Source: Paramoeba atlantica
Taxonomy: Eukaryota > Protista > Discosea
Length of the DNA stretch: 64,000 nt
Assembly: GCA_977017575.1 (NCBI GenBank)
Contig: CDRNVI010000029.1
Location: 248,001-312,000, forward strand
Reading direction: 5' to 3'
Every line of letters begins with the position of its first letter. Positions within the stretch are counted from its first letter, which is position 1. Below the pieces are notes generated by a model. The model did not search any database. It saw only the letters and a program-made list of their open reading frames with translations, and had not been told where the DNA came from. This document shows positions 6,374 to 49,751 of the stretch, piece by piece. The position numbers and the translations under genes were made by a program.

Positions 6374-7357
6374 ATGCTTCCGACGCAACATGCTGACAAT
6401 ACGTTTTTATACCAAGTCGCAGGCCATGGTGACATCCTACATTCAGGAACGGACTCACAAAAAAGTTTGTCAGTGTGGAAAGTCGCGAGAAAGCATGAAC
6501 TAGCATGTTACAATAAGATGTTGGCAAAAAACCACCCCTTACACAAGCTTTCCCACTACGTTCCACCCTTCTATGGGGAAGTCATCTCACCCTGTACGCA
6601 GAATGCTAATGATAATTGTCCATTACCTTATTCTGAGCCAAAAGTGTCTCATTCTTCATGTCGGATTTCAGCTGCTCCTAGACTGTTTCAAAGCAAACGG
6701 TGCTTAGTCAGTCGCTTAGAAATGAAGAACATGGTGTCTTCATGTGGCAATCCTCAGGCTATGGATATTAAGCTGGGAAAAGTTCATCACAACCGAACAA
6801 TGCACCCTGAGAAGGTGCAGGCGAGTAAGAAGAAAGTATCAGTGTGCACTTCAAGGGCATATGCATTGCGCATCTCCGGTGCTTCAGAAGTACATAATGC
6901 GAGACTCCGAGGACGCTCAGCTCAATCGTTGTTAGAATTACGTGACGTTCTGCAAGAATTCTTTCTTCGTTCTTCGATAGACTGCTATAATAAATTTGCC
7001 CACGAAAGCACCGTGTTACATCAATCTATTCGCGAAATTACTTCCCTTCAAAATGCGCTGCGAAACATTACTCTGCATACCAGTTTTATATCATGTTCGG
7101 TTCTTATTACCCACGACGAATCTGCGAGTCATCGCACATCAGGTTGGAATTGCGCTGCAAAAGTCATTAATGCAAAGCTCATCGATTTTGCGAATTGTGT
7201 TTCATCTTCCGAACACGGATTGCTTGATATTCATGTGGGTGCGGCTTACGGACTACGTATGTTGGCTACTCTTCTGCAACACCTTTACCACAAGTCACTC
7301 TTTATTAACACCTATAGAACAGACACTCATAACATACATGTAGACATACATGTATGA
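6374..7357 (+). CDS. Inositol polyphosphate kinase (IPK/IPMK/IP6K superfamily)
   Basis: PQAMDIKLG (PxxxDxKxG), SCSVLI (SSLL-like) and KLIDFAN (IDF) motifs; QVAGH at the N-terminus. Confidence 0.85.
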   Translation: MLPTQHADNTFLYQVAGHGDILHSGTDSQKSLSVWKVARKHELACYNKMLAKNHPLHKLSHYVPPFYGEVISPCTQNANDNCPLPYSEPKVSHSSCRISAAPRLFQSKRCLVSRLEMKNMVSSCGNPQAMDIKLGKVHHNRTMHPEKVQASKKKVSVCTSRAYALRISGASEVHNARLRGRSAQSLLELRDVLQEFFLRSSIDCYNKFAHESTVLHQSIREITSLQNALRNITLHTSFISCSVLITHDESASHRTSGWNCAAKVINAKLIDFANCVSSSEHGLLDIHVGAAYGLRMLATLLQHLYHKSLFINTYRTDTHNIHVDIHV

Positions 7358-8855
7358 ATCATATCCACTAAGCCACAGTGCAAACGTTTATCGATACCTA
7401 TGTTTCTACTGCTTCATGATTTTTTGGAACAAACCTGTCTTTGTACGCACCCAATCACTACTTCATTCTACACTAAAAAGATTCGTGTAAGTGTATTTCT
7501 ATTTAGTCTAACCTTCACTCGACTCTTTGATGCGTGAAATCGTCTCGATACAGGCCGGCCAGTGTGGAAATCAAATTGGTTCTAAGTTTTGGGAAGTGAT
7601 ATGCGATGAGCACAGCGTCGACCCGTCAGGCACGTATGTGGGTGACAATGATCGTCAGTTGGAGCGCATTAATGTGTACTTCAACGAAGCGACCGGAGGT
7701 CGATATGTTCCGCGTGCCGTGCTGATGGATCTGGAACCTGGTACAATGGACAGCGTTCGGGCTGGTCCGTATGGTCAAATCTTCCGCCCGGACAACTTTG
7801 TGTTTGGTCAGACTGGGGCCGGGAATAACTGGGCTAAGGGGCACTACACGGAGGGTGCTGAGCTCATTGATAGCGTACTGGATGTTTGCCGCAAAGAGGC
7901 TGAAAGCTGTGACTGCCTGCAGGGATTTCAAATCTCACACTCCCTTGGTGGTGGGACAGGTTCAGGTACCGGAACTTTGTTGATTTCCAAGCTCCGTGAG
8001 GAGTACCCGGACCGCATGATGCTCACATTTAGCGTGATTCCTTCGCCCAAAGTGTCTGACACCGTCGTGGAACCCTACAACACAACTCTTTCGGTGCACC
8101 AACTCGTAGAGAACTCGGATGAATGTCTGTGCATTGACAATGAAGCGCTGTATGACATTTGCTTTCGTACCTTGAAGTTGACGACTCCCACGTTTGGTGA
8201 CCTGAATCATCTTGTGTCTGCGGTGATGTCCGGTGTGACGTGCTGTTTACGCTTTCCGGGACAGCTGAACTCCGACCTTCGCAAACTTGCGGTGAACCTG
8301 GTTCCATTTCCTCGCCTGCACTTCTTCATGGTCGGGTTTGCCCCCCTGACTTCTCGTGGCTCTCAGCAGTATCGCACATTTACTGTTCCTGAGTTAACGC
8401 AGCAAATGTTTGACTACAAGAACATGATGTGTGCCGCGGACCCGCGACACGGACGCTATCTCACTGCATCCGCCCTGTTCCGTGGACGTCTCTCCACGAA
8501 GGAGGTTGATGAGCAGATGTTGAACGTGCAGAACAAGAACAGCTCGTACTTCATCGAGTGGATCCCGAACAACATCAAGAGCTCTGTGTGTGACGTCCCT
8601 CCGAAGGGGTTGAAGATGACGGTGACCTTTATCGGGAACAACACTTGCATCCAAGAAATGTTCCGTCGCGTGGCGGAGCAGTTCACTGCAATGTTTCGGC
8701 GAAAGGCTTTTCTTCACTGGTACACCGGAGAAGGGATGGATGAGATGGAATTCACGGAAGCGGAAAGCAACATGAACGACCTTGTGGCAGAATACCAACA
8801 ATACCAGGATGCCGGGATCGAGGAGGAAGAACTCATTGACGAGCCGATGGCTGAA
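7302..8855 (+). repeat. Direct duplication block, copy 1 (beta-tubulin CDS plus about 230 bp of 5' flank); copy 2 at 10737-12306
   Basis: CDS offset is 3451 bp. All alternative-frame ORFs in the track are identical between copies. The 5' flank differs by small indels, and similarity ends at GCTGAA just before the stop. Confidence 0.95.
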
Positions 8856-8864
8856 CAGCAGTGA
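7530..8864 (+). CDS. TUBB: Beta-tubulin, copy 1 (C-terminus ...DEPMAEQQ)
   Basis: [41 protein letters not shown]. The ATG is at 7530; the track start at 7527 is a TTG. Confidence 0.99.
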
Positions 8865-10703: not shown

Positions 10704-10980
10704 GTATACAGTCCCTATGTTAATACGTATAGAAACTTATCAATACCTATAGAACAGATACTCATAACATACAGATACATGTATGAATCATATCCACTAA
10801 GCCATAGTGCAAACGTTTATCGATACCTACACTGTATGTACTTACACTGTATGTTTCTACTGCTTCATGATTTTTTGGAACAAACCTGTCTTTGTACGCA
10901 CCCAATCACTACTTCATTCTACACTAAAAAGATTCGTGTAAGTGTATTTCTATTTAGTCTAACCTTCACTCGACTCTTTG

Positions 10981-12309
10981 ATGCGTGAAATCGTCTCGAT
11001 ACAGGCCGGCCAGTGTGGAAATCAAATTGGTTCTAAGTTTTGGGAAGTGATATGCGATGAGCACAGCGTCGACCCGTCAGGCACGTATGTGGGTGACAAT
11101 GATCGTCAGTTGGAGCGCATTAATGTGTACTTCAACGAAGCGACCGGAGGTCGATATGTTCCGCGTGCCGTGCTGATGGATCTGGAACCTGGTACAATGG
11201 ACAGCGTTCGGGCTGGTCCGTATGGTCAAATCTTCCGCCCGGACAACTTTGTGTTTGGTCAGACTGGGGCCGGGAATAACTGGGCTAAGGGGCACTACAC
11301 GGAGGGTGCTGAGCTCATTGATAGCGTACTGGATGTTTGCCGCAAAGAGGCTGAAAGCTGTGACTGCCTGCAGGGATTTCAAATCTCACACTCCCTTGGT
11401 GGTGGGACAGGTTCAGGTACCGGAACTTTGTTGATTTCCAAGCTCCGTGAGGAGTACCCGGACCGCATGATGCTCACATTTAGCGTGATTCCTTCGCCCA
11501 AAGTGTCTGACACCGTCGTGGAACCCTACAACACAACTCTTTCGGTGCACCAACTCGTAGAGAACTCGGATGAATGTCTGTGCATTGACAATGAAGCGCT
11601 GTATGACATTTGCTTTCGTACCTTGAAGTTGACGACTCCCACGTTTGGTGACCTGAATCATCTTGTGTCTGCGGTGATGTCCGGTGTGACGTGCTGTTTA
11701 CGCTTTCCGGGACAGCTGAACTCCGACCTTCGCAAACTTGCGGTGAACCTGGTTCCATTTCCTCGCCTGCACTTCTTCATGGTCGGGTTTGCCCCCCTGA
11801 CTTCTCGTGGCTCTCAGCAGTATCGCACATTTACTGTTCCTGAGTTAACGCAGCAAATGTTTGACTACAAGAACATGATGTGTGCCGCGGACCCGCGACA
11901 CGGACGCTATCTCACTGCATCCGCCCTGTTCCGTGGACGTCTCTCCACGAAGGAGGTTGATGAGCAGATGTTGAACGTGCAGAACAAGAACAGCTCGTAC
12001 TTCATCGAGTGGATCCCGAACAACATCAAGAGCTCTGTGTGTGACGTCCCTCCGAAGGGGTTGAAGATGACGGTGACCTTTATCGGGAACAACACTTGCA
12101 TCCAAGAAATGTTCCGTCGCGTGGCGGAGCAGTTCACTGCAATGTTTCGGCGAAAGGCTTTTCTTCACTGGTACACCGGAGAAGGGATGGATGAGATGGA
12201 ATTCACGGAAGCGGAAAGCAACATGAACGACCTTGTGGCAGAATACCAACAATACCAGGATGCCGGGATCGAGGAGGAAGAACTCATTGACGAGCCGATG
12301 GCTGAATAA
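10981..12309 (+). CDS. TUBB: Beta-tubulin, copy 2 (C-terminus ...DEPMAE)
   Basis: Identical to copy 1 except that it lacks the last two residues. Confidence 0.99.
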
Positions 12310-30708: not shown

Positions 30709-31000
30709 TGTCCCCTCAACTGCAAGTATTTAATGATCGCGCCTACAACCACCATGTAGTATACGAAGCAGGATTATTTCATGTGAAATTTTTGTTAACG
30801 GATTGTTTTTGCTTGGAATAATCATTTCAAGTCACAATATTCGATTCAACTTAGAATATGTTGGGGCGAAAATTAGACTACGTACAAGATAAAAAAGTCC
30901 CGAAACAAGGGTGTACGGGAGAACCGTAAATAAACCATTAAGGAAACAATTTTTACAGAAAAAATAGCCAAACCACACCTTCCTTAGATTCTAAGAATCC

Positions 31001-34000
31001 ATGTCCTGGGGAAATCCATCCGGTGCATGGGGAGGCGCCCCAAATCCAAACCCCACTCCAACCGGCTGGGGATCGACCACGAGCACAACCCCAGGGCCCA
31101 CCGCTTCCCCATGGGGAAGCAGCCAACCTGCCCAACCCAGCTGGGGAGCCCCACCCACTCTGGGGGCGACCAAACCCGCCTGGGGGTCGTCCACCACCTC
31201 GAGCGCCCCCGCACCGTGGTCCGGGCTCCCCACAACGGCAACCACAACCACCCCGGGCTCCGGATCCCATCCCTGGGGGGGCGTCGCCCCCTCTGCTGCT
31301 GTTTCATCCGTACCCGCGCCTACGCCCTGGGGAGCCCAGCCCCCACGCGCTGCGCCCTCCCCCCCCCTCTGGGGCAGCGCCCCCACGACAGGGATCACCG
31401 CGACGCCTGCCGGTATGGGCTCGAGCCCCGGCAACGCGTGGGGGAGTGGTGGGGGCAGGAGTAGTGCTCCCCCGAGTACGGGACCCGGGGGGTGGGGGAC
31501 TCAACTCGCCGGGAGTGCCCCAACCTCCGGGGCAGGCTGGGGTGGTTCGACCTCGGGAGGAGCCCCCTCGAGTGGGACACCGGGCTGGGGGACAGCCCCG
31601 GGAGCCCCCGTGAAGCCTGCTGGGGCTGGGGCCACGCCGTGGGGGAGTACGAGCACGGGGAGTAGTGGTACAGGGGGGTGGGGAGGGATGGGGGGAGGTG
31701 TGACGGGACTGGGCTCCACGACGACACAGACCTCTCCGTTTGGTACGGCCTCTGGGACACAGCCTCCTGCATGGGGAGGAGGGACTGGGGGGTTGGGAAC
31801 GACGGGGAGTGGAGGTTCGGTTGCAACGGTCAGTGGATGGGGTGCGGGTCCGACCCAGCCCGCTGCGAGTAGCACGCTGAGTACCTCTGGAACCTCCTGG
31901 GGGTTGGGTGCGAAGCCAGCTACGAGTTCGTGGTCCACAACCGCGACTTCAGGAGTTCTTTCTGGAACCACACCGTTTGGCAGTTCTCAGACGACGTTGT
32001 CCAGCTCCACACCCGGGCCTTCCCTTGGTTCTTCGGCGCCATGGGCTCCCACCAAACCATCGGCTCCTTGGGGGGGCAGTGGGACGAGCGGGTCGGCGTG
32101 GCCCTCCCTGGGTGGATCTTTGCAGCCATCCGCGGTCCCTGCCGTGCCCTCGTTTGCGCCTCCCGCGAGTGCACCCACAGGGCCTGTGCTAGATCTAGTT
32201 CGTCACCCCTATGGGAACCTTCTGGAGGCTTCCGGGGAGAAGTTGCGCGCTATGAGCGAATCTAAACCTTTGGCCCACACGCAGAGCATCCCACGTTCCC
32301 TAGTGACGCGTTCTCGTTCCCAAGTACATCGGCTGCCGACACATGAAAAAGCGAAAAATCAGCACAGTGAACGACAGCAAACGCCATTGACCTTGAGCAC
32401 GGGTCATATACCCACTCTACAAATAGATGCAGAAGCATTGAGGAGATCAGCTTCCACTGTACGTGTGCGACGAAATGTTGATACTTCTTCGGAAGAAGAA
32501 TTCGGAGCCGTGAAGAAACTTTCTTTACTAACCCCGCAACCAAGAGAGAACCACACGCCTGTTTGTGAACCCAACGAGCGTCCTACATGTGTGCGAGCGG
32601 GAGGATTTCCAACACTTGTGGATACGACGCATATTGGCATACTCCCAAGTCTTGATGAGCTGCAGAGTCGAACGCCGAATTCCTTAAAGGCGGTGCCCAA
32701 CTTTGTTATCTATAGAAAAGACGGAAAATTGCAGGTCAACTTCTTGGAACCTGTTGACCTTACGGGCTGCACGCTTGATGAGTGTGTACGTTTGCAAAGT
32801 AGCGGTCATGTGACTTTTCCACCCGCTTCCTCATTACAAATTCCTGCGCTAGTCCTTGTTCGTGGATTAATCGGCCTTTCACAGGATGACGTTCAAGAAA
32901 AATGCTTTCAGGATGGTAATGTATTTGTAGACTTTCTCAAGGAGAATGGCACGGACACACTAGTGTACTTAACTAATGCAGATTCCAGCTATGAAATACC
33001 TGACTTGTACAACCGCACCAATCGCTACGCCATCAACCAAGTTTTCCCGATTCAGCATGACTCGTTCCCAGGTGGTGACATTAGTTCCAAAGAGTTGCTC
33101 CCGACTGCTCTAGAATCGAATGAAGAAATCAAGAAAGCCCCAGTTTGGTCTAAAACGAGCAAACAAACTATGAACTACGACGTGTTTCTTCCACGTAAAG
33201 AAGCTGATTCTAAAATTAGACCCTTCGATGGAGCTTCAGCTCGGGATCTCCGAGACGGATATTCGGTACTTTACAGACCACGTGCGGAGGCGGAAAACGC
33301 GATTGATCTTCACGACCACGCTTATACACCTGCAGAAAGATTGAGCATACCAGAAAATTTTATGTCGCATGCTGATGTATCGGATTTTGCAGAAACAAAT
33401 TCATCAGAAGAGCAGATTTGGCTCGAGGATATTGACTTTCGAACAATGGAGCCAGATAGAGATTTTTCTGCCAGTATATCACATGATTTAATTCGTAATT
33501 TTAGCACAGAATCTCGAGCTCTGCTTAAAAATGTGCGCGGAAACTGGTCAAAGGAAGGTTTGCTGTGCATTCCGTCGGGTGCAATGTTGGGACGAAAACA
33601 CGTTCAAGCGAGCAGCATTTACTCAATGCGCTCTATCGCCACGTCATTCGACGTCGGTGATTTGGTTACCGCTTTTTCTTACATACAGTCTTGCACGAAA
33701 CCACGTGATGAATTTCCGAGCACGGCGTCGAAAAGAAATGTTTGCTTCCGTACAGAAACTACAGAGGGAAAAAACCTACTCGCATCTCTACATGCCCTGG
33801 TAACACCCAAACTGCACGACTACAAAAATTTGAGCCCGGAAATTGCGCTCAACGATTTACTTAGAGAGACAATGGAAGAGGCCATTGGATTACTTCGCTC
33901 CTGGTTCGAATTAGAAGGAAGCGTATGTATGGAAGACAAAGATTATGAGGAAACTTATAACGAAGGTATGCGGCGACAAAATATTCAAGATTGGTTGGGT

Positions 34001-35017
34001 GAGTGCGTGAAAAGAACAGCTGGAAGTCCCCGCTTCCCAGGAAAACCACTATTCAGTCTTTTGCTGAAAAGAAGAACTACAGAGGCAGTTGAGCTTTGTA
34101 TTTCAATGTCAAAGCCCGAACTTGCGGCGATTCTTGCTGGGACTGGATACGGCGCCGTTAGTAACGCCACTGATTGTGCCCGTTCATATCTGAACGAAAA
34201 GTATGAAGAATTATCCGACGATCACAAATCATGTTTAAAGCTAGCCGCTGGAGATCTCGACGAACTTCTGGACGAATGTCAATTTCAATATAAAGAGGGA
34301 AAGGTAAGACGAAATCCACTGGGAGCAGATTGGCATCATTTGCTGGGTGCCTACATGTGGTATTGTGCTCCCTGTTCTTGGTCTTTGCGGAAGTGTTTTT
34401 CTAGCTTTAGAGATGCCTTACGGAATTGTAAGGAACTCAAAAATGGTAGATATAATTCATTCGAGAGAGTAGTACCGCATTACGCCTTTCTAGGAGATGT
34501 CTTGAGCGATTCTGGTAACGACTTTTCAATAAAAATTGCCAAGAGCGCAATGAAACGGAAGGATATTACGTATCTCTTGCTTCAGCATTTTTGTGAACAA
34601 CAGCCCGATTTTTGGAACTATCTCTTGGTTCCTTTTTGCCACTCCCCTTATCCCTTGGATTACTTGTTGCCTACTATCATTGTTCTAGTTCTAAGGTCCA
34701 ATTCTTGTGCCCCAGATCAAGTAGCAGATTCAATACTACTACGTTGCATTACACAACTGGAGCACCTACAAGCACATGATTGCAGTATGACATTGATGAC
34801 ACTTCTATGTAATGAAGAAATTCGACAAAAACAGAGCGAGGAGTATATTCTTCGTAATGCTACTTACTTTAATAAGAGAGAAGCCGGATCGATATATGAT
34901 CTTGATGTAAATAGTCACGCGCAAGCCGATACTAGCGGTGTAACAACGACCGGGGTGCAGAGTAAAACTGTGGACGTGGTCAGAGAGGTACGGAGTGCAG
35001 TACACAACCGTATGTAG
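31001..35017 (+). CDS. NUP158: Nup98-96 orthologue (Nup158-type) with WG-repeat N-terminus
   Basis: Low-complexity S/T/G/P N-terminus. Autoprotease-fold domain ILPSLDEL...VPNFVIYRKDG..VNFLEPVDLTG..LDECV lacks the HFS cleavage site. Nup96-like DWHHLLGAYMWY. Confidence 0.8.
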   Translation: MSWGNPSGAWGGAPNPNPTPTGWGSTTSTTPGPTASPWGSSQPAQPSWGAPPTLGATKPAWGSSTTSSAPAPWSGLPTTATTTTPGSGSHPWGGVAPSAAVSSVPAPTPWGAQPPRAAPSPPLWGSAPTTGITATPAGMGSSPGNAWGSGGGRSSAPPSTGPGGWGTQLAGSAPTSGAGWGGSTSGGAPSSGTPGWGTAPGAPVKPAGAGATPWGSTSTGSSGTGGWGGMGGGVTGLGSTTTQTSPFGTASGTQPPAWGGGTGGLGTTGSGGSVATVSGWGAGPTQPAASSTLSTSGTSWGLGAKPATSSWSTTATSGVLSGTTPFGSSQTTLSSSTPGPSLGSSAPWAPTKPSAPWGGSGTSGSAWPSLGGSLQPSAVPAVPSFAPPASAPTGPVLDLVRHPYGNLLEASGEKLRAMSESKPLAHTQSIPRSLVTRSRSQVHRLPTHEKAKNQHSERQQTPLTLSTGHIPTLQIDAEALRRSASTVRVRRNVDTSSEEEFGAVKKLSLLTPQPRENHTPVCEPNERPTCVRAGGFPTLVDTTHIGILPSLDELQSRTPNSLKAVPNFVIYRKDGKLQVNFLEPVDLTGCTLDECVRLQSSGHVTFPPASSLQIPALVLVRGLIGLSQDDVQEKCFQDGNVFVDFLKENGTDTLVYLTNADSSYEIPDLYNRTNRYAINQVFPIQHDSFPGGDISSKELLPTALESNEEIKKAPVWSKTSKQTMNYDVFLPRKEADSKIRPFDGASARDLRDGYSVLYRPRAEAENAIDLHDHAYTPAERLSIPENFMSHADVSDFAETNSSEEQIWLEDIDFRTMEPDRDFSASISHDLIRNFSTESRALLKNVRGNWSKEGLLCIPSGAMLGRKHVQASSIYSMRSIATSFDVGDLVTAFSYIQSCTKPRDEFPSTASKRNVCFRTETTEGKNLLASLHALVTPKLHDYKNLSPEIALNDLLRETMEEAIGLLRSWFELEGSVCMEDKDYEETYNEGMRRQNIQDWLGECVKRTAGSPRFPGKPLFSLLLKRRTTEAVELCISMSKPELAAILAGTGYGAVSNATDCARSYLNEKYEELSDDHKSCLKLAAGDLDELLDECQFQYKEGKVRRNPLGADWHHLLGAYMWYCAPCSWSLRKCFSSFRDALRNCKELKNGRYNSFERVVPHYAFLGDVLSDSGNDFSIKIAKSAMKRKDITYLLLQHFCEQQPDFWNYLLVPFCHSPYPLDYLLPTIIVLVLRSNSCAPDQVADSILLRCITQLEHLQAHDCSMTLMTLLCNEEIRQKQSEEYILRNATYFNKREAGSIYDLDVNSHAQADTSGVTTTGVQSKTVDVVREVRSAVHNRM

Positions 35018-36568: not shown

Positions 36569-36737
36569 ACGAGCCCCATATTCCTTTTTGCTTTATATCA
36601 AGATTTTTTTCTTAGCCTAACGTAAGCACCATTTTTCTTTATGCTAGGATCATTTGCAGAAATGTTTTGCAGTTCTAGTATTGTTTTAGTGTTGCAGACT
36701 TAGCGCAATTTACGTTTTGTAGTTTTAGAAATTATTG

Positions 36738-39700
36738 ATGGCACCGCAGCGCCATCTCGTACTGCAGAAGCAATTTTACTTTGAAACATATTTTACTACC
36801 ATTTTCATACGATCAGCGTTATCAATGAAACAAGGAAAGATGAGATTTCCTCTTGAGGCAGTTCATTGCAGACCCAAAGTGAGAAGTGCGCTATATTCGA
36901 ATGACCTTGAAATGCAAGTTCTGGACTGTACACAATACATTAGGCCGCCAAGTCCTGGGATTTCCGTAGTTTCCCATATCGAAGTTCCAGTTATCCGCCT
37001 ATACGGGTGTACCATGAGTGGCCACTCGGTTCTTTTGCATGTATATAATTTTGAGCCATATCTTTGGATCGAAGCCCCTCCCCAATGGAACGCTTCACAG
37101 CATATGGAGTATTTTCGGCAATCGCTCAATACCATGTTGGCGCCTCAGACGCGTTCTCCCGGAACCATCGTTCGAATTGAAGAACATGAGAGGGATTCCC
37201 TGCTCTACCACTCCGTGTCTGAAAACTCGAAAAAGAGTTTTCTAAAGCTTGTGTGTCAGCTTCCCGGACAAATACCAAAGGTGCGCACTGCAGTCGAAGG
37301 TGCATTGACCCTGCCACGATTGTGGAACGGCCAAAGGAATTTTCTCACATATGAGTCGAATGTACTGTTTCCTCTTCGTTTTCTTGTTGATTTGGACATT
37401 GGCGGCAGTAGTTGGGTACGAATACCGAAAGGAAAATTCCGCGAGACGCAGCCTCGCGTATCAAACTGCCAAGTTGAACTGGATGTCTCACAATCAGTTA
37501 TTGAGTCCTTCGAGGCTACGGGCGAGTGGATGAAAATAGCCCCCTTTCGTATATTATCTCTTGATATCGAATGTCAGGGACGAAAAGGGTATTTTCCGGA
37601 AGCAAGTCGAGATCCAGTCATTCAGATTGCAGTACATGGTACAACAGCCCATGGAACAGGGCATCGATCCTCAGAAGAGACTGCTGAAGAGAATGAATCC
37701 TTTGATGACGAACAAGTTGCGTGTAACAAAGTGTTCACCTTGGGATCTTGCGCCAGTATCGCCAGTTGTCATGTTCACAGCTATGAGAATGAAAAAGACA
37801 TGCTGATTGCCTTTTCAGACTTTTTGTCTACGTATGACCCAGATTTCCTCACGGGGTATAACATTTCGAACTTTGATTTTCCGTACCTTATGGAGCGAGC
37901 AACAACACTGCAAATTGCTAGCCGTTTTAGTACATGGGGTAGAATTCTTGACGAACGGACAAGCGTCAGGGACAAGTCGTTTAGCTCCAAACAGCAAGGA
38001 AACCGTGTCTATAAGGAATTAATCTGCGATGGACGTATTGTGCTGGATGTTATGCTATGTGTTCAACGAGACTACAAATTGCGATCATACTCGCTAAACA
38101 GTGTTTCACAGTCTTTTCTTGGAGAACAAAAGGAAGACGTTCACCATTCTATTATCTCTGATTTGCAGAACGGAAATGAGGAAACTCGCCGACGTTTAGC
38201 GGTTTACTGTCTAAAAGATGCGGTACTTCCTGTTCGGCTAATTGAAAAGCTAATGTTGCTTATCAATAACATTGAAATGGCTCGAGTTTCCGGAGTTCCC
38301 ATAGGCTGGCTTCTAGAGCGGGGACAGCAAATTAAGGTTTTTTCACAGATGTTACGCAAGGCGCAGAAAAAGCAATTGCTCTTTCCTGCAGTTGAGAGAT
38401 ACACCCCTAGCGAAGAAGGAGTTGGTTTTGAAGGTGCTACGGTGATTGAACCTAAACGTGGTTACTACGAAGAACCGATTGCGACACTCGATTTCGCTTC
38501 TCTGTACCCCTCCATTATGATGGCTTATAACTTGTGCTACTCCACATTGGTTCGTCCTTCTGAAGTAGGAAAGTTGCCATCCGATTCCTATACGACAACT
38601 CCATCTGGGCATGTGTTTGTCAAGCCGGAGCGATTCCGAGGTATCCTGCCCCAAATATTAGAAGAATTTCTCACTGCGAGAAAGGCAGCAAAAGCGGCCA
38701 TGAAACATGCTACGACCCCTCTTGAACACGCAGTGTTAAATGGGCGACAACTAGCTCTCAAAATCAGTGCCAATAGCGTGTACGGTTTTACCGGTGCGCA
38801 AGTAGGTAAGTTACCATGTCTTGAAATCAGTTCCTCAGTAACTTCTTATGGGCGCACAATGATAGAAAAAACTAAGGAACTTGTAGAGCAACACTATAGT
38901 ACTGCAGAAGGTTATGAGAAAGATGCACAAGTTATTTACGGTGATACAGATTCCGTGATGGTAAATTTTCGGGCATCCGATTCCTCAGCTTCTGACTGCG
39001 TAAAACTGGAGAAGTCGATGAAATTAGGCAAAGAGGCCGCGTCACTGGTAACAAGCAATTTTCCTTCTCCAATTAAACTGGAATTCGAAAAAGTATACTT
39101 TCCGTACATGTTGATGAATAAGAAACGGTACGCTGGTCTTCTGTGGACTCAACCGGATAAGTACGATAAGCTGGATGTTAAAGGGATTGAAGCCGTTCGA
39201 CGTGACAATTGTCCTCTAGTTGCTAATATCGTAAGCACCGTTCTGAATCGAATACTCATCGAACGAAGCATACCTCGTGCAGTTGACTTCGTGAAGAAAA
39301 CTATCAGCGACATGCTAATGAATCGTCTTGACATTTCACACCTTGTGATATCGAAAACATTCTCAAAAGCCGAAGATGAATACGTAGCGAAACAGGCTCA
39401 TATAGCTTTGGTCGAAAGAATGCGCAAAAGAGATCCAGCTACAGCTCCCGTTGTTGGCGATCGTGTAGCATATGTCATTGTCAAAGGTCCGAAGGGAGCG
39501 AAAGCGTATGAAAAATCGGAGGACCCTCTTTATGTTCTAGAGCACAATATTGCCATTGACGCGAATCACTATTTGGAGCATCAGCTTGCTCTGCCGTTGC
39601 AAAGACTTTTTGAAGGAATTATAGACAAACCCGAATCGCTTGTGAATGGAGATCATACCCGGCACATATCTGTCAGTACGCCAAGCAAGGCAGCCGGGGG

Positions 39701-40019
39701 TATTATGAAGTTTGCTAAAGTTAATTTACAGTGCCTGGCTTGCCGTACCGCGATGAAGCCAGGTGAAAAGGGTGCTGTTTGTAAAGCTTGCGAGCCCATC
39801 GCGTCAGAGGTCTACTTACGCATACTTGAAAAACGAAATCATTATGAAACTATGTTCGGTCGGGTTTGGACGCAGTGTCAACGTTGCCAAGGCTCTCTAC
39901 ACCAGGAGGTGCTGTGTACCAGTAGGGATTGTCCAGTCTTCTACATGCGAAAAAAAGTTCAGTCAGTGCTAAAGGAGGAGCAATCCTTCCTGGATCGATT
40001 CGGACACGTTGAGTGGTAA
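36738..40019 (+). CDS. POLD1: DNA polymerase delta catalytic subunit
   Basis: LDIEC exonuclease I motif, DFASLYPSIMMAYNLCYST, KISANSVYG, YGDTDS, and C-terminal CysA/CysB (CQRCQGSLHQEVLCTSRDCPVFY). Confidence 0.98.
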   Translation: MAPQRHLVLQKQFYFETYFTTIFIRSALSMKQGKMRFPLEAVHCRPKVRSALYSNDLEMQVLDCTQYIRPPSPGISVVSHIEVPVIRLYGCTMSGHSVLLHVYNFEPYLWIEAPPQWNASQHMEYFRQSLNTMLAPQTRSPGTIVRIEEHERDSLLYHSVSENSKKSFLKLVCQLPGQIPKVRTAVEGALTLPRLWNGQRNFLTYESNVLFPLRFLVDLDIGGSSWVRIPKGKFRETQPRVSNCQVELDVSQSVIESFEATGEWMKIAPFRILSLDIECQGRKGYFPEASRDPVIQIAVHGTTAHGTGHRSSEETAEENESFDDEQVACNKVFTLGSCASIASCHVHSYENEKDMLIAFSDFLSTYDPDFLTGYNISNFDFPYLMERATTLQIASRFSTWGRILDERTSVRDKSFSSKQQGNRVYKELICDGRIVLDVMLCVQRDYKLRSYSLNSVSQSFLGEQKEDVHHSIISDLQNGNEETRRRLAVYCLKDAVLPVRLIEKLMLLINNIEMARVSGVPIGWLLERGQQIKVFSQMLRKAQKKQLLFPAVERYTPSEEGVGFEGATVIEPKRGYYEEPIATLDFASLYPSIMMAYNLCYSTLVRPSEVGKLPSDSYTTTPSGHVFVKPERFRGILPQILEEFLTARKAAKAAMKHATTPLEHAVLNGRQLALKISANSVYGFTGAQVGKLPCLEISSSVTSYGRTMIEKTKELVEQHYSTAEGYEKDAQVIYGDTDSVMVNFRASDSSASDCVKLEKSMKLGKEAASLVTSNFPSPIKLEFEKVYFPYMLMNKKRYAGLLWTQPDKYDKLDVKGIEAVRRDNCPLVANIVSTVLNRILIERSIPRAVDFVKKTISDMLMNRLDISHLVISKTFSKAEDEYVAKQAHIALVERMRKRDPATAPVVGDRVAYVIVKGPKGAKAYEKSEDPLYVLEHNIAIDANHYLEHQLALPLQRLFEGIIDKPESLVNGDHTRHISVSTPSKAAGGIMKFAKVNLQCLACRTAMKPGEKGAVCKACEPIASEVYLRILEKRNHYETMFGRVWTQCQRCQGSLHQEVLCTSRDCPVFYMRKKVQSVLKEEQSFLDRFGHVEW

Positions 40020-44165: not shown

Positions 44166-45806
44166 ATGCTCACCTGTGGAATATGTTTTGAAATTATGAA
44201 AGACCCTGTCGTGCTGCTCTGCGGCGACGCCTTTTGCGCAACGTGTCTGAGAGGTCACATGGAGCGTCACGCAGGCCCGGAGGGCGCGCTTTGCTTCATG
44301 TGTCACAAAGTCTCCCCCGGAGTTACCGTACAAACCGTCTCACGGTACCGTAGCCCTGAATTAGCCGCGCGTATCCGTGAGCTGCTGGGCACTGATTCTT
44401 CCGAGGCAGCAACGTGCGAGTGGTGCGAGGAGAAGCCCCCGACGCAGTACTGTGCCCTGTGTAACTACGCCCTGTGTGCGGAGTGCACTGTCGCGGTACA
44501 TAAGAATAGTGCGAAGCGCAACCACAGCACGTTCTCCCTACAGGATGGACGGAAGCCTACAGGGTCCGCAGGGGGGTGTCACAAATGTAACCAGAAAGGT
44601 CATGAGGAGTACCGCGCGGAATTCTTTTGTGTACAATGTCAAACCACTGTTTGTGTGTATTGCCTACAAGTGGGTCATCACCGAGGCCATGAGAATATCT
44701 CCGTAGCGGATGCCGCGGCGGATGTGCGTCAGCAGCTATCTCGTCAAGTTGAGGAAGTGATTCAAATCAAGAACTCAATTGATGCCGCGGGTAAAGAGCT
44801 CAATCGTGTCACTTACCATTATGAAGATACGTATGATCATGTTGAACAAGCTCTAACAGAGCGCTTTGCGTACTACCAGCAACAGTTGCTGCGAAAAGAA
44901 TCTGAAGTGCGCGAGGTGTTACAGGGACTGCGTTCACAAGGAGACCGCGTTATCGCAGAATGTAGAAAAGAAACATTGCTACAGATGGATAAATTGAATG
45001 AAACTATTGCGCGCGGAAGGCATTTTCAGAGTTCCGCAAGCGACACGGATGTGATTGAAAATCGTGTTGCGTTAAACACATTTCAAAACTTGGAAGCACC
45101 TTGCATCCAAGGTGGTGGCTTCCATTTTAAGGATCCTGGAGAGTTGAATCTTGGCGATGTAGGAGTCAGTCTTGACATATCTGAAATAGAAAGTGCTAAC
45201 ACAGTTCCGAAATCTTTAAGGGCCCCCGTATCCGCCAAATCAGTATCTTCCGACCCAATGCGCCGTGAAGCAGGTGCAGGACGCACGCCAATATACACTG
45301 AGAAACCTTCGCATACGTCGGCTGCGTTGCCTAAAGCGAAACTTAGTTTTCCCGAGGATCGTGAAGTAAAAATACACAATTTACCCGAAGGTCAACAGTT
45401 CGTTTGTTCCGAAACGTTATCGACACCCCAAATTGGAATGAGAGCGAAAGAATCTTTCATGGAAGGTGTGCACTCATGGAGTGTTCGTATTACCCGTGAG
45501 TTTAAAGGTGGAATTGGGCTGGTGTGCCTTGGGGGAACTTCTGAGGCTCAAACAGGGGAAGCATTAGTATGGCGCCCGGCAAAGCAGCTTGTGGAGGGTC
45601 GGTTGGGTGTCCCTACTGAATTAAGTCGCCGACATCCAATTCCTCGATCGGGTGATACATTGCACTTTACATTCGATAGTGAAAGGCGCGTGCTAAAAGT
45701 GGCTCATAACGATACCCCGCGTGGGGTGCTTGTGGAACATGTCCCCGGGTGGGTTGCTCCGTGTCTGATTTTTACGTCTGGAGATAGTGTCACTGTACTG
45801 AACTGA
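44166..45806 (+). CDS. TRIM/RBCC-like protein: RING, two B-boxes, coiled coil, SPRY-like C-terminus
   Basis: CGIC..CGDAFCATC..CFMC; CEWC..YCALC..LCAEC..VH; FFCVQC..VCVYC...HHRGH; GVHSWSVRI...GDTLHFTFDSERRVL. Confidence 0.8.
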   Translation: MLTCGICFEIMKDPVVLLCGDAFCATCLRGHMERHAGPEGALCFMCHKVSPGVTVQTVSRYRSPELAARIRELLGTDSSEAATCEWCEEKPPTQYCALCNYALCAECTVAVHKNSAKRNHSTFSLQDGRKPTGSAGGCHKCNQKGHEEYRAEFFCVQCQTTVCVYCLQVGHHRGHENISVADAAADVRQQLSRQVEEVIQIKNSIDAAGKELNRVTYHYEDTYDHVEQALTERFAYYQQQLLRKESEVREVLQGLRSQGDRVIAECRKETLLQMDKLNETIARGRHFQSSASDTDVIENRVALNTFQNLEAPCIQGGGFHFKDPGELNLGDVGVSLDISEIESANTVPKSLRAPVSAKSVSSDPMRREAGAGRTPIYTEKPSHTSAALPKAKLSFPEDREVKIHNLPEGQQFVCSETLSTPQIGMRAKESFMEGVHSWSVRITREFKGGIGLVCLGGTSEAQTGEALVWRPAKQLVEGRLGVPTELSRRHPIPRSGDTLHFTFDSERRVLKVAHNDTPRGVLVEHVPGWVAPCLIFTSGDSVTVLN

Positions 45807-46142
45807 TAAGTACCGGGACGCAGGTCATAAAAGCCATAAAAGTGGGAGAACGAAAACAGGTGCAGTTAAATTGTGTGGTAATTATGCATTTCAGTTCTGA
45901 ATGTACATGCTACAGAGCATGAAGAGAATGAACTGGGGTACGAGCCCAAGCACTGGATAATAAGCAAACAACATGTATGCTCATGTATGTAGTTGATCAT
46001 TCGTAGTGATTCAAGGAAAAGAACGAATACTACCCTTATTGTCATGATTTCTTTGATCGCTGTAAAGATAAGAATTTTGTTCATTGACTAAGAATATTGT
46101 GTATCAGTACATGTGTACGATTACCTTTTTTATACCTTTCTG

Positions 46143-49100
46143 ATGCATATAAAAACCATCGCTATAGCAGGTTTTAAGTCCTATCGCGAGCAAATCTTTG
46201 AAACGCCCTTCAGCGCAAAACACAATGTTGTAGTAGGCAAGAATGGGAGTGGAAAATCGAATTTTTTCAATGCGATTCTCTTTGTTCTTTCAGAAAAATA
46301 TTCTTCTTTGAGGCAAAGTGAAAGGAAAGACCTTTTGCATGCCACTGCAGGTTCTCCTTCACTAAGTGCGTATGTGGAAATCACGTTCGACAATTCGGAT
46401 GGCCGACTTGTCATTCCTGGCATGGCGGAGGAAAAAGAGATACGCATTCGACGAACTGTAGGTATACAAAAGGATGAATTTCGTGTAAATGATAAGGCAA
46501 TATCGGCTCAAGATGTAAGACAACTCCTTGAAAGTGCTGGTTTTTCCTCTGCAAATCCCTACTACGTAGTAGAACAAGGTCGAATTGTTCGGCTAACCAA
46601 TATGGGTGATACAGAGAGATTGGAACTTCTGAAAGAGGTGGCAGGAACCAAGGTATACGAAGATCGTCGCATTGAATCTATGCACATCCTTGAGGAAGCC
46701 AAAGAAAAGAGAGAAAAAATAGATGAAACTATCCTAAAAGTCGAATCGCGGCTAAAGGAGGTTGAATCCGAAAGAGATGAATGGAGAACCTTTCAAGCGT
46801 TGGAGCAGAGGAGAAAAGCACTGGAGTATAGCTTATATGCCAAGGAAAGCAAAAAAGTGGACCTTGAGCTTGAGGATCTTGAAAACAGCAAACGCGACTT
46901 AACAACTTCCCATGATGCTCAATTAGAAAAAACTAAAGAGCTGCAGAAACAAATGCAGGAAGCAGAAAGAGAAGTTTCGAAAGCATCACGTGCGTTAACT
47001 GCCCTTGACGAAGAAAAACTGTCTCTTGAAACTGAGCGATTGAAGTTAGTTAAGCTCCTTGCTGAACTGCAATTGTCTTCAAAGCATGCAACAAACACGG
47101 TTTCTGCCTCAGATTCTGAACTCGCAACTTTGAAGCGAGAACTCAAAAGCACCGCAGTTTCTATCGAAAAAACTAAAAAGGAACTTGATGCCAAGTCGAA
47201 GATACTGGAAAATCATATGTCACATACCGGAAAAGAAGAAGGCAGCTTAATTCAACGTGAATCCCGTTTATTTCAACTTCAAACGAAGAGAGGACGACAA
47301 AGGCTATTCCATTCTAAGACAGAACGCGACAAATGGCTACATGACGAGATTCTCAAAACTGAAAAGTTACTTAAAGAGCATGAAAAAGAATTCAAATCGC
47401 TTCTGGAAGAAGAAAAACGACTAGAAACTGAATTAAGTGAGGAAATGGGTCTTGTTGAGAAACAGAAGACATCAATAGAAAAACAAGAGACAATCGCATC
47501 GAAAACGGAAACATTGGCACTGGAAGCCATTAAAAGTCGAGATTCTTTTCACAACGAGCGAAGGATCCTTTTTCAAAAAATTCACGATGCGGAGAAGAAA
47601 CTACGTGCGCAACGAGACGATCAAGAGAGAGCCCAGCATCTGCTGAATAAAACGTTTTCAAGTCACGAAATTCGTCAAGGCTTGGCTAGTATGCAGGAGT
47701 CCTTGAATGAAATTGGTGAGAAGAAGCTCAAGTCATCCGTTCACGGCTCCGTTATGGAGCTTTTTTTATGCGATCAGCGTTTCTATACTGCCGTTGAGAC
47801 AACTGGGGGGAATGCTCTGCTGAGCGTCGTCGTTGATACATTCGAAGATGGTGCAAAAATTCTTGCGCACATGAACAAACACAATAAACCTGGACGTGTC
47901 ACGTTTCTTCCACTAGATACTTGCCGAGGAAAAAAGAAGGATCTGCCACACACAAGTGACGTGGTTCCTCTCATAGACCAACTTCGATTCAAAGAAAAGC
48001 ACCAGGTAATCTTTGCGGAGCTATTTGGTCGCACGGCGTTAGCTTCATCCTTGGATTCTGCTGCTACAGCCTCCAAGCAATACAATTGTGACGCAGTGAC
48101 TTTAGATGGAGACCAAGTCAATAGAAAAGGAGGTATCCAAGGAGGATATCGGGTCACGACGTCCAGGTTGCAAGCCCATGCAGACTTAATCAGCTTAAAA
48201 GCGGACTGTGAGCGCAGCACTTCCACTCTCCACGAACTTCGTCAGAGTTTAGCCACTCTTGAAAAGAAAATCGCGTCACAACTACACGACTCAGAAGCCG
48301 CCTCAGAGAAAAGTGAGACTATGGTTGAAGAAATAAGAAATGCTCACCGTGAAAAACGTCGGGTGTATGAACATATTACCCGTAATCAACAACAACTACT
48401 CCGTACAAGAGAAGCAATTGGTACAACTAACAGTTCATTAGCAGACGTGAAGGGGAAAGTTATTACCTTTCGAGCTGAGTTAAAGGAAGATTTTCAATCC
48501 CGCATGGGTGATGACGACGAGAAGGAGCTTGACCAACTCATGAGTCAAGTTAGTGAACAAAAGAAGCAAGTGTCCAATGAAAAGCAAAAAACTGCTACAC
48601 TTTCAACAGAGGTACAAGTGTTAGAAGATACGTTAAATTCTTTGCGCAAACAATTGGATTCGGTACAGGACCGAAGTACGTGTTTACAGCATACCTCAGA
48701 GCGAACCAAGAATCATCGGATCAACTCAGAGCTCGGTTCCGTCGAAGTGGAGGTACGTGATATTACAAACCGAATTGTCAATGTTGAGAATGAAATCGCA
48801 GATCTTACTAAAAGGAAACAGGAAAATGAAAAGATATTTCAAGAAAAAAATTCCAACGAATTACAATACACTCGCGAAATGCAATCCGGAGGCGAAGATT
48901 TCGATAAATATATTACCAAGAAGGCTTTACTAGGCCAACAATTTGATGAGCTGAAGTTCAAGTTGGAACGAGTAGGTGTCATTCCGAGCAACCTATCAGA
49001 GTATGATGCAATGAGCGAAACAACTATTAGAACCGAGCTTAAGAAGTGTTCCGAAAAGTTACGATCCTTTACCCACGTTAATCGCAAAGCATTGGAGCAG

Positions 49101-49751
49101 TATACTCAATTGGAAGAAAATTTTAACGAGCTAGTAGAAAAACGAGCTGTTACTGAAAGAGAGCTTACTTCAATCCGAGAAATGATGCTTAAACTTGATG
49201 CACAGAAGGACGAGACTATTGAGCGAACGGTGAAGCAAGTGCAGTTTCAGTTTGAGAAGGTCTTTTTGGAACTTGTAACAGCAAAAGGAGCATCAGCTGA
49301 ATTACAACTGTTGCGATCAAAGGAATCACCAGGTAAAACTGGTGTGGAAGGATACTCTGGTATTCGCATTCGTATAAGCTTTGGACTCGGCACACCGGTG
49401 TCAGAATTAGCGCAACTTTCCGGAGGACAAAAGTCTCTCGTTGCTTTGTCTCTTATATTCGCGATTCAGAGGTGTGATCCGGCTCCGTTCTATTTATTCG
49501 ATGAAATTGATGCTGCCTTGGACGAGGCATACCGTAGCAGCGTCGCGCAAATGATCAAGCGGCAATGCGAGGGCGCTCAATTCATTACGGCTACATTCAA
49601 ACAGGAGATGCTTGACGTGGCTGATAAGGTTTATGGCATCGTTTTTCGCAATCGCGTGAGCAGAATCCAAGAAATTACTCACGAAGAGGGGTCGGCGCTT
49701 TTACGCAAGGCAGCGCAGGAACGGCAGGACAGCACTAAAGAGAAGACGTAA
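46143..49751 (+). CDS. SMC3: Cohesin subunit SMC3
   Basis: MHIKTIAIAGFKSY, GKNGSGKSNFF, FSSANPYYVVEQG, hinge GRVTFLPL, LSGGQKSLVALSLIFAIQRCDPAPFYLFDEIDAALD. Confidence 0.97.
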   Translation: MHIKTIAIAGFKSYREQIFETPFSAKHNVVVGKNGSGKSNFFNAILFVLSEKYSSLRQSERKDLLHATAGSPSLSAYVEITFDNSDGRLVIPGMAEEKEIRIRRTVGIQKDEFRVNDKAISAQDVRQLLESAGFSSANPYYVVEQGRIVRLTNMGDTERLELLKEVAGTKVYEDRRIESMHILEEAKEKREKIDETILKVESRLKEVESERDEWRTFQALEQRRKALEYSLYAKESKKVDLELEDLENSKRDLTTSHDAQLEKTKELQKQMQEAEREVSKASRALTALDEEKLSLETERLKLVKLLAELQLSSKHATNTVSASDSELATLKRELKSTAVSIEKTKKELDAKSKILENHMSHTGKEEGSLIQRESRLFQLQTKRGRQRLFHSKTERDKWLHDEILKTEKLLKEHEKEFKSLLEEEKRLETELSEEMGLVEKQKTSIEKQETIASKTETLALEAIKSRDSFHNERRILFQKIHDAEKKLRAQRDDQERAQHLLNKTFSSHEIRQGLASMQESLNEIGEKKLKSSVHGSVMELFLCDQRFYTAVETTGGNALLSVVVDTFEDGAKILAHMNKHNKPGRVTFLPLDTCRGKKKDLPHTSDVVPLIDQLRFKEKHQVIFAELFGRTALASSLDSAATASKQYNCDAVTLDGDQVNRKGGIQGGYRVTTSRLQAHADLISLKADCERSTSTLHELRQSLATLEKKIASQLHDSEAASEKSETMVEEIRNAHREKRRVYEHITRNQQQLLRTREAIGTTNSSLADVKGKVITFRAELKEDFQSRMGDDDEKELDQLMSQVSEQKKQVSNEKQKTATLSTEVQVLEDTLNSLRKQLDSVQDRSTCLQHTSERTKNHRINSELGSVEVEVRDITNRIVNVENEIADLTKRKQENEKIFQEKNSNELQYTREMQSGGEDFDKYITKKALLGQQFDELKFKLERVGVIPSNLSEYDAMSETTIRTELKKCSEKLRSFTHVNRKALEQYTQLEENFNELVEKRAVTERELTSIREMMLKLDAQKDETIERTVKQVQFQFEKVFLELVTAKGASAELQLLRSKESPGKTGVEGYSGIRIRISFGLGTPVSELAQLSGGQKSLVALSLIFAIQRCDPAPFYLFDEIDAALDEAYRSSVAQMIKRQCEGAQFITATFKQEMLDVADKVYGIVFRNRVSRIQEITHEEGSALLRKAAQERQDSTKEKT

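Follow-up and report, generated by a model that had tools for sequence, protein, structure and literature searches.

A Nup98-96 orthologue with tryptophan in its repeat motif

Within the 64,000-nucleotide stretch of contig CDRNVI010000029.1 analysed here (hereafter the window, meaning the whole stretch), the gene at 31001..35017 encodes a true Nup98-96 orthologue in which the aromatic residue of the defining repeat motif has changed, such that its N-terminal domain carries tryptophan-glycine (WG) dipeptides where relatives carry phenylalanine-glycine (FG). Reading from the sequence, we consider it probable that Trp here takes over from Phe both the cohesion of the pore barrier and its binding of receptors, at a lower density. 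Phe-Gly motifs are regarded as universal carriers of selectivity at the nuclear pore, and a natural Trp-for-Phe Nup98-96 would be a counter-example to that claimed universality. The gene comprises the following features.

31001..35017, plus strand: whole gene, a single open reading frame (ORF) with an ATG start, for a predicted uncleaved Nup98-96 (kinetoplastid Nup158 type) of 1338 aa
31001..32170, plus strand: WG-repeat domain (aa 1-390), with 19 WG, 4 other W, 2 FG and 1 further F, spacers of S/T/G/P/A and no acidic residue
32207..32224, plus strand: PYGNLL motif (aa 403-408), aligning with the LPDF..KPYGNVLL motif that lies 3' of the FG domain in kinetoplastid Nup158
32573..33025, plus strand: autoproteolytic domain (APD, peptidase S59) fold without His-Phe-Ser (HFS), aa 525-675, ending in ...VYLTNADS, borne out by Pfam, AlphaFold and Foldseek
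34049..34867, plus strand: Nup96 alpha-helical domain (aa 1017-1289; Pfam PF12110, 1.1e-17, 64.5 bits)

Evaluating the composition of the repeat domain, we reproduced exactly the counts that a first-pass annotation of this DNA had reported for the first ~390 aa (19 WG, 4 more W, 2 FG). In total, aa 1-390 hold 23 W, 3 F, 4 K and 2 R with no Y, Cys, D or E, and are made up largely of G (21%), S (18%), P (15%), T (15%) and A (12%), whereas the remaining 948 aa of the protein are ordinary in composition and contain 9 W and no WG. Glycine follows tryptophan in 19 of 23 cases, which is far beyond what a glycine share of 21% would give (binomial p=6e-10), and in 100,000 shuffles of the domain the number of WG never exceeded 15. 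The spacing of W and F taken together is regular as well (mean gap 15.3 aa, sd 4.3, coefficient of variation 0.28), compared to a coefficient of variation of 0.91 for random placement, with an equally regular arrangement in 0 of 20,000 placements. The only large holes in the W series are occupied by the two FG and the lone F, and we therefore interpret W and F as members of one common lattice. Gaps from one W to the next range from 7 to 37 aa and are mostly 10 or more, the residues next to W are P/G/A/S and G, and the domain contains one LWG, no GLFG and 6 LG motifs (two with TTG codons).

Tandem Repeats Finder detected no tandem repeat in the DNA of this domain, so the 19 WG are held at diverged sites rather than being recent copies of one unit, and recent tandem amplification of a single W-bearing unit was rejected on this basis. 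The protein has no match to Pfam PF13634, and with 2 FG against 19 WG at the equivalent place it does not qualify as an FG (GLFG/GGFG) repeat domain; judged by sequence, it is the FG domain's equivalent by position and composition and not an FG domain by motif. As a lead only, the nearest ESM language-model feature neighbours of aa 1-390 were the Nucleoporin_FG, Nup42 and NUP98A clusters (scores 0.84-0.85), with GW182-like proteins not being nearest. The ORF scan showed no other WG-rich or FG-rich ORF within the window, and searching the word index with nothing but the WG domain gave no match at E<=1, although this is a low-complexity query and the result does not imply an absence of other WG proteins.

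Identity and divergence of the gene

We regard the gene, on the combined strength of sequence comparison and structure models, as a genuine Nup98-96/Nup158 orthologue from a very divergent kinetoplastid that is predicted to remain one uncleaved chain. An exhaustive phmmer search with aa 401-1338 against 1.84 billion representatives returned no more than 18 hits, with identities of 26-30% for the best of them, and every hit with a recognisable nucleoporin name was a kinetoplastid Nup98-96 (Bodo saltans, Strigomonas, Leishmania tarentolae, Trypanosoma vivax, Novymonas), the Bodo saltans orthologue being 29% identical to the window's protein. Hits from Phytomonas and T. conorhini were unnamed or labelled otherwise, and two further hits came from other eukaryotes or were labelled only as transcripts. 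A family profile built from 14 sequences, the window's protein included, matched human Nup98-96 (7f60_C) at 5e-41 with separate matches to its APD (1.7e-15) and Nup96 (6e-22) regions, and also matched Xenopus Nup96.

For the APD, Pfam PF04096 scored 24 bits in a scan of the whole protein, under its cut-off of 28.4, versus 28.6 bits when aa 525-675 were scanned alone, and the domain scanned alone matched in all 14 family members. The AlphaFold model of aa 525-675 has a pLDDT of 85, and the top 21 Foldseek matches in the PDB were all APDs of Nup98, Nup145N or Nup116 (probability 1.00, TM 0.53-0.63). The catalytic His-Phe-Ser is absent from all 14 aligned sequences, including the ...VYLTNADS end of the window's protein, and TbNup158 is reported to lack these residues too and not to be cleaved (Obado et al. 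2016, PMC4758718). The first-pass annotation had taken the protein for a Nup98-96 orthologue that combines a Nup98 autoprotease fold, devoid of HFS, with a Nup96 domain, and this identity holds by Pfam, profile search and AlphaFold/Foldseek; the C-terminus on which it hung matches both the Nup96 and the APD models. Because the PYGNLL motif lies directly C-terminal of the repeat domain, as PYGN(V/L)L follows directly after the FG domains of relatives, the WG domain occupies the exact place of the FG domain. We saw no non-repeat island resembling GLEBS (Rae1/Gle2-binding) in aa 1-372.

The structured part of the protein (32171-35014) shares just 17-20% identity with relatives over the full alignment, and its terminal branch in a maximum-likelihood tree measures 5.4 changes per site; 6 of the 11 forks in this tree lack resolution and the window's protein is unplaced, in relation to P0006 (a relative described below) as well. 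Word-index searches with aa 520-1338 and with the family alignment recovered only the protein itself and one match from an unrelated lineage, the relatives being too distant for 5-mer words, and JGI metagenome contigs scanned with the family alignment and with P0006 yielded no relatives. At aa 1259 the window's protein has His where 13 of 13 relatives have Trp.

FG repeats in relatives and a possible intermediate with mixed WG/FG

Comparing repeat domains across relatives, we found that WG is not the norm among kinetoplastids and that, as far as these sequences go, the window's lineage is not alone. In Bodo saltans (locus L004) the domain contains about 32 GGFGQQ motifs and lacks Trp, the closest relative (P0002, a metagenome sequence at locus L002) has 44 FG and no WG, P0007 has GGFG, and T. 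vivax, Novymonas, P0016, P0003, Cavostelium and a fungal sequence have Phe only. The first-pass annotation had reckoned with WG-rich Nup158 N-termini being already the norm in related kinetoplastids; instead, Bodo saltans, T. vivax, Novymonas and three metagenomic relatives are pure FG, with P0006 mixed. Aromatic density also differs, at 6.7 aromatics per 100 aa of repeat domain in the window's protein versus 10-12.8 in nine FG-type relatives.

The one other WG-bearing lineage is P0006, a Nup158 of an uncultured kinetoplastid-like organism known from a single Logan contig of run SRR34068980 (L001:5246-6660, aa 1-470). It combines 11 GGWG with 19 GGFG and three motifs with Tyr, two of them GGYG and one AGYG. 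Its tryptophans are encoded by TGG and the phenylalanines of its GGFG motifs by 18 TTC and 1 TTT, with W and F interchanging inside one PAAGG[W/F]GKAPAA unit and W units concentrated N-terminally. The mean spacer in P0006 is 13.8 aa after W versus 9.5 aa after F (Mann-Whitney p=3e-5, a generous value as the units are related). P0006 may represent an intermediate in a switch from F to W.

Several database models that appear to have no repeat domain are merely truncated, and we recovered their repeats by in-frame reading upstream. The annotated Bodo saltans Nup158 (CUG94084.1, 953 aa; CYKH01002220.1, L004:3933-5000) is N-terminally truncated, and the open frame upstream of it runs from a Met start through ~300 aa of GGFGQQ repeats (32 FG, 0 W) to an end of LADF..PYGNSLL. 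The P0002 and P0007 models are truncated likewise (L002:2-1837, L003:3-1190; L005:3-509). Genes have been called inside these GC-rich GGFG regions, on the opposite strand in L002 and L003 and on the same strand, overlapping, in L005, and they look like gene-caller artefacts. A non-repeat island (…M[LQ][HA]WD[ED][YFW]R[AT][AM]NN…) interrupts the repeat domain of P0002 (aa 113-179), P0006 (aa 158-198) and P0003 (aa 100-151) and is conserved among them; by its sequence it is probably a GLEBS/Rae1-binding motif, and a GLEBS-like island is missing from T. vivax, Novymonas, P0016, Bodo saltans and the window's protein.

Weighing the explanations for the WG domain

We evaluated whether the WG domain might be an artefact, arising from a wrong frame, from misassembly of GC-rich DNA or from TGG being decoded unconventionally, and we judge this very improbable. 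The artefact reading draws on the fact that GC-rich low-complexity DNA gives long ORFs in other frames too (here 31023..31613 on the plus strand and 31501..31971 on the minus strand, which are composition by-products) and on an automatic gene call on another assembly (P0001) that begins at an internal GTG. Against this, the frame of the WG domain runs unbroken into the PYGNLL motif, the APD and the Nup96 domain, and its DNA is unchanged in Logan contigs of three runs from one study. Invariant tryptophans of the Nup96 region (W998 and W1111, in 14 of 14 sequences) are encoded by TGG, and in the adjacent gene for DNA polymerase delta, Trp residues shared with the human protein are encoded by TGG and conserved Phe residues by TTY, so that TGG is read as ordinary Trp and both codon reassignment and frame error were rejected as the cause. 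We also consider unlikely a neutral, mutation-driven origin, whereby GC pressure eroded TTY codons in a decaying or dispensable FG domain and Trp has no special role. The WG domain does lie in the GC-rich island that the first-pass annotation had described (64-75% GC versus 40-51% elsewhere in the gene; GC at third codon positions, GC3, 0.57-0.71 versus 0.33-0.49), and this island is not due to amino-acid composition alone because synonymous GC3, comparing the same amino acids, is raised too (0.55-0.71 in the repeat domain, 31001-32200, versus 0.23-0.51 in the rest of the gene). The extreme divergence of the whole protein, and a domain that is shorter and less motif-dense than the repeat domains of relatives, would also fit such decay. 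However, the suggestion from the same annotation that GC drift from TTY to TGG had helped appears weak, since relatives' FG domains, at 58-77% GC, are about as rich or richer and yet retain Phe, and since the three F codons surviving in the WG domain are all TTT. Moreover, a change from Phe to Trp takes two substitutions, via Leu or Cys, and the domain contains no Cys and only the 6 LG motifs (two on TTG); the change would have occurred at >=19 sites (that is, at least 19), always before G and evenly spaced; and the total lack of acidic residues and the intact 4-kb ORF would be left unexplained.

The first-pass annotation's other reading was an Argonaute (Ago)/RNA-silencing dock on the pore. 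In the form weighed here, the WG domain would be chiefly an Ago hook, its many motifs receiving Ago/PIWI-small-RNA complexes that survey exported transcripts or transposon RNA, and the barrier would be left to other nucleoporins. Ago binding calls for at least two Trp, ten or more residues apart, which enter Trp pockets of the PIWI domain (PMC9262622), and the W of this domain conform to that rule, lying in a disordered stretch with small flanking residues and mostly 10 or more residues apart. Yet in position the domain is homologous to an FG domain in every relative, its F and W belong to a common lattice, W and F are swapped within one repeat unit in P0006 and, as a lead only, its language-model feature neighbours are FG nucleoporins. 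We think a principal role as an Ago hook improbable, while an Ago dock in addition to the barrier is conceivable: the hook spacing rule is also satisfied, but the sequence context favours a barrier over an Ago dock. Under the preferred reading of a Trp-based barrier, Nup98-96 would serve as an outer-ring nucleoporin in one uncleaved chain, as in trypanosomes, with its N-terminal disordered, uncharged domain projecting into the pore channel and with Trp, instead of Phe, as the aromatic "sticker" of that domain in this lineage. WG motifs ~15 residues apart would then provide the cohesive inter-repeat contacts and the docking of transport receptors that FG provides elsewhere, and Trp, as the stronger sticker, might allow fewer motifs per length to compensate.

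Several observations weigh against a Trp-based barrier. At 390 aa the WG domain falls short of the usual length of Nup98 FG domains (500-700 aa), and it has no GLFG-like motif. The long branch could conceivably reflect relaxed constraint on the whole gene, and the spacer statistic in P0006 counts related repeat units as independent. None of the runs listed is on record as RNA, and X5, for which an RNA origin is guessed, gave a single 154-nt contig in mid-gene. Finally, a change of aromatic would demand receptor co-evolution, considering that phases in which Phe is swapped for Tyr (GLYG) exclude native transport receptors in vitro (Ng et al. 2023, PMC9918544); for the same reason, a Trp barrier implies adapted transport receptors.

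Extending the argument beyond this gene, we tentatively entertain a pore-wide switch, somewhat doubtful on present sequence, in which Nup98-96, Nup62 and further nucleoporins would have changed together, and importins, NTF2 and Mex67 would have adapted in parallel to bind indole side chains. Such a switch, if true, would amount to a natural "orthogonal" chemistry of nucleocytoplasmic transport, with P0006 as an intermediate stage. The window's protein and the mixed P0006 together offer an evolutionary experiment on how cohesion, motif density and receptor pockets co-evolve, and natural sequences become a means of asking "how specific is Phe?". Should Argonaute bind to the WG array as well, the pore and RNA silencing would be physically and directly connected.

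Gene neighbourhood and other features of the locus

The neighbourhood of the gene is a kinetoplastid-style one-strand gene cluster, including the following genes.

968-2350, same strand as the Nup98-96 gene: myo-inositol-1-phosphate synthase
6374-7357, same strand as the Nup98-96 gene: inositol polyphosphate kinase
36735-40019, same strand as the Nup98-96 gene: DNA polymerase delta catalytic subunit
44166-45806, same strand as the Nup98-96 gene: RING/B-box protein
46113-49751, same strand as the Nup98-96 gene: SMC protein

The Nup158 loci of Bodo saltans and of P0006 showed no synteny with this cluster, and by Pfam there was no nucleoporin, karyopherin or Argonaute among the 18 neighbouring ORFs. 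Two tubulin genes (7527-8864 and 10978-12309) have identical Pfam scores, with a 434-aa ORF lacking a Pfam match between them, and this pair is probably a tandem repeat unit. Directly upstream of the Nup98-96 gene, the stretch 30960-31000 holds a short pyrimidine-rich tract (ccacaccttcctt) and then AG dinucleotides 6-15 nt before the ATG at 31001, which from its sequence is a plausible candidate for a spliced-leader acceptor. Within the gene, run X1 shows two alleles over 31554-31663 that differ by 3 SNPs, one causing a replacement (31584 G>C, Gly195Ala) and two silent (31603 A>G and 31633 C>T), none of which touches a Trp codon.

Comparison with known systems

Full-text literature searches revealed no description of a natural WG-repeat nucleoporin, though subscription journals are thinly covered and novelty is therefore not proven. 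Among the closest known systems is the kinetoplastid Nup98-96, including TbNup158 (PMC4758718), which has the same order of repeat domain, PYGN(V/L)L, non-catalytic APD and Nup96 helices in an uncleaved protein, and in trypanosomatids and Bodo saltans it shares with the window's protein the lack of a GLEBS-like island. The two differ in that kinetoplastid Nup158 has GGFG with Q/A/G-rich spacers, whereas the window's protein has WG with S/T/P/G/A-rich spacers at about two thirds to one half of the motif density (6.7 versus 10-12.8 aromatics per 100 aa). P0006 likewise has natural WG, encoded by TGG, in a Nup98-96 repeat domain, but unlike the window's protein it mixes WG, FG and YG, uses an A/P-rich unit typical of kinetoplastids and possesses the GLEBS-like island.

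Further afield, animals, fungi and plants have cohesive Nup98 GLFG domains that are likewise disordered and uncharged and lack acidic residues in particular, their aromatic-Gly motifs being evenly spaced N-terminal to a pore-anchoring APD. Cohesive Nup98 FG domains are reported to select against charged and especially acidic residues as a conserved property, and selection against Trp is listed as conserved across all eukaryotic clades; they have one FG per 12 residues, a prevalence of GLFG and a length of 500-700 aa, and shorter spacers bring more cohesion while overall hydrophobicity stays roughly constant (Ng et al. 2023, PMC9918544). The WG domain shares this charge depletion, its 390 aa including neither D nor E and just 4 K and 2 R, and departs from GLFG domains in having Trp as its main aromatic, one aromatic per 15.3 residues, a length of 390 aa and one LWG without any GLFG. 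The Argonaute hooks of GW182/TNRC6, NRPE1, SPT5L and Tas3 likewise repeat WG/GW motifs along a disordered region, their Trp residues being spaced by 10 or more. These hooks, however, sit in silencing or transcription factors, whereas the WG domain belongs to a protein predicted from its sequence to be part of the pore scaffold, and, unlike GW182-type hooks, it has the position of an FG domain and a lattice in common with residual FG. A lineage-specific departure from GLFG also exists in the NIFN repeats of Tetrahymena MicNup98, which are linked to altered transport selectivity; NIFN keeps Phe, whereas the domain described here changes the aromatic residue itself.

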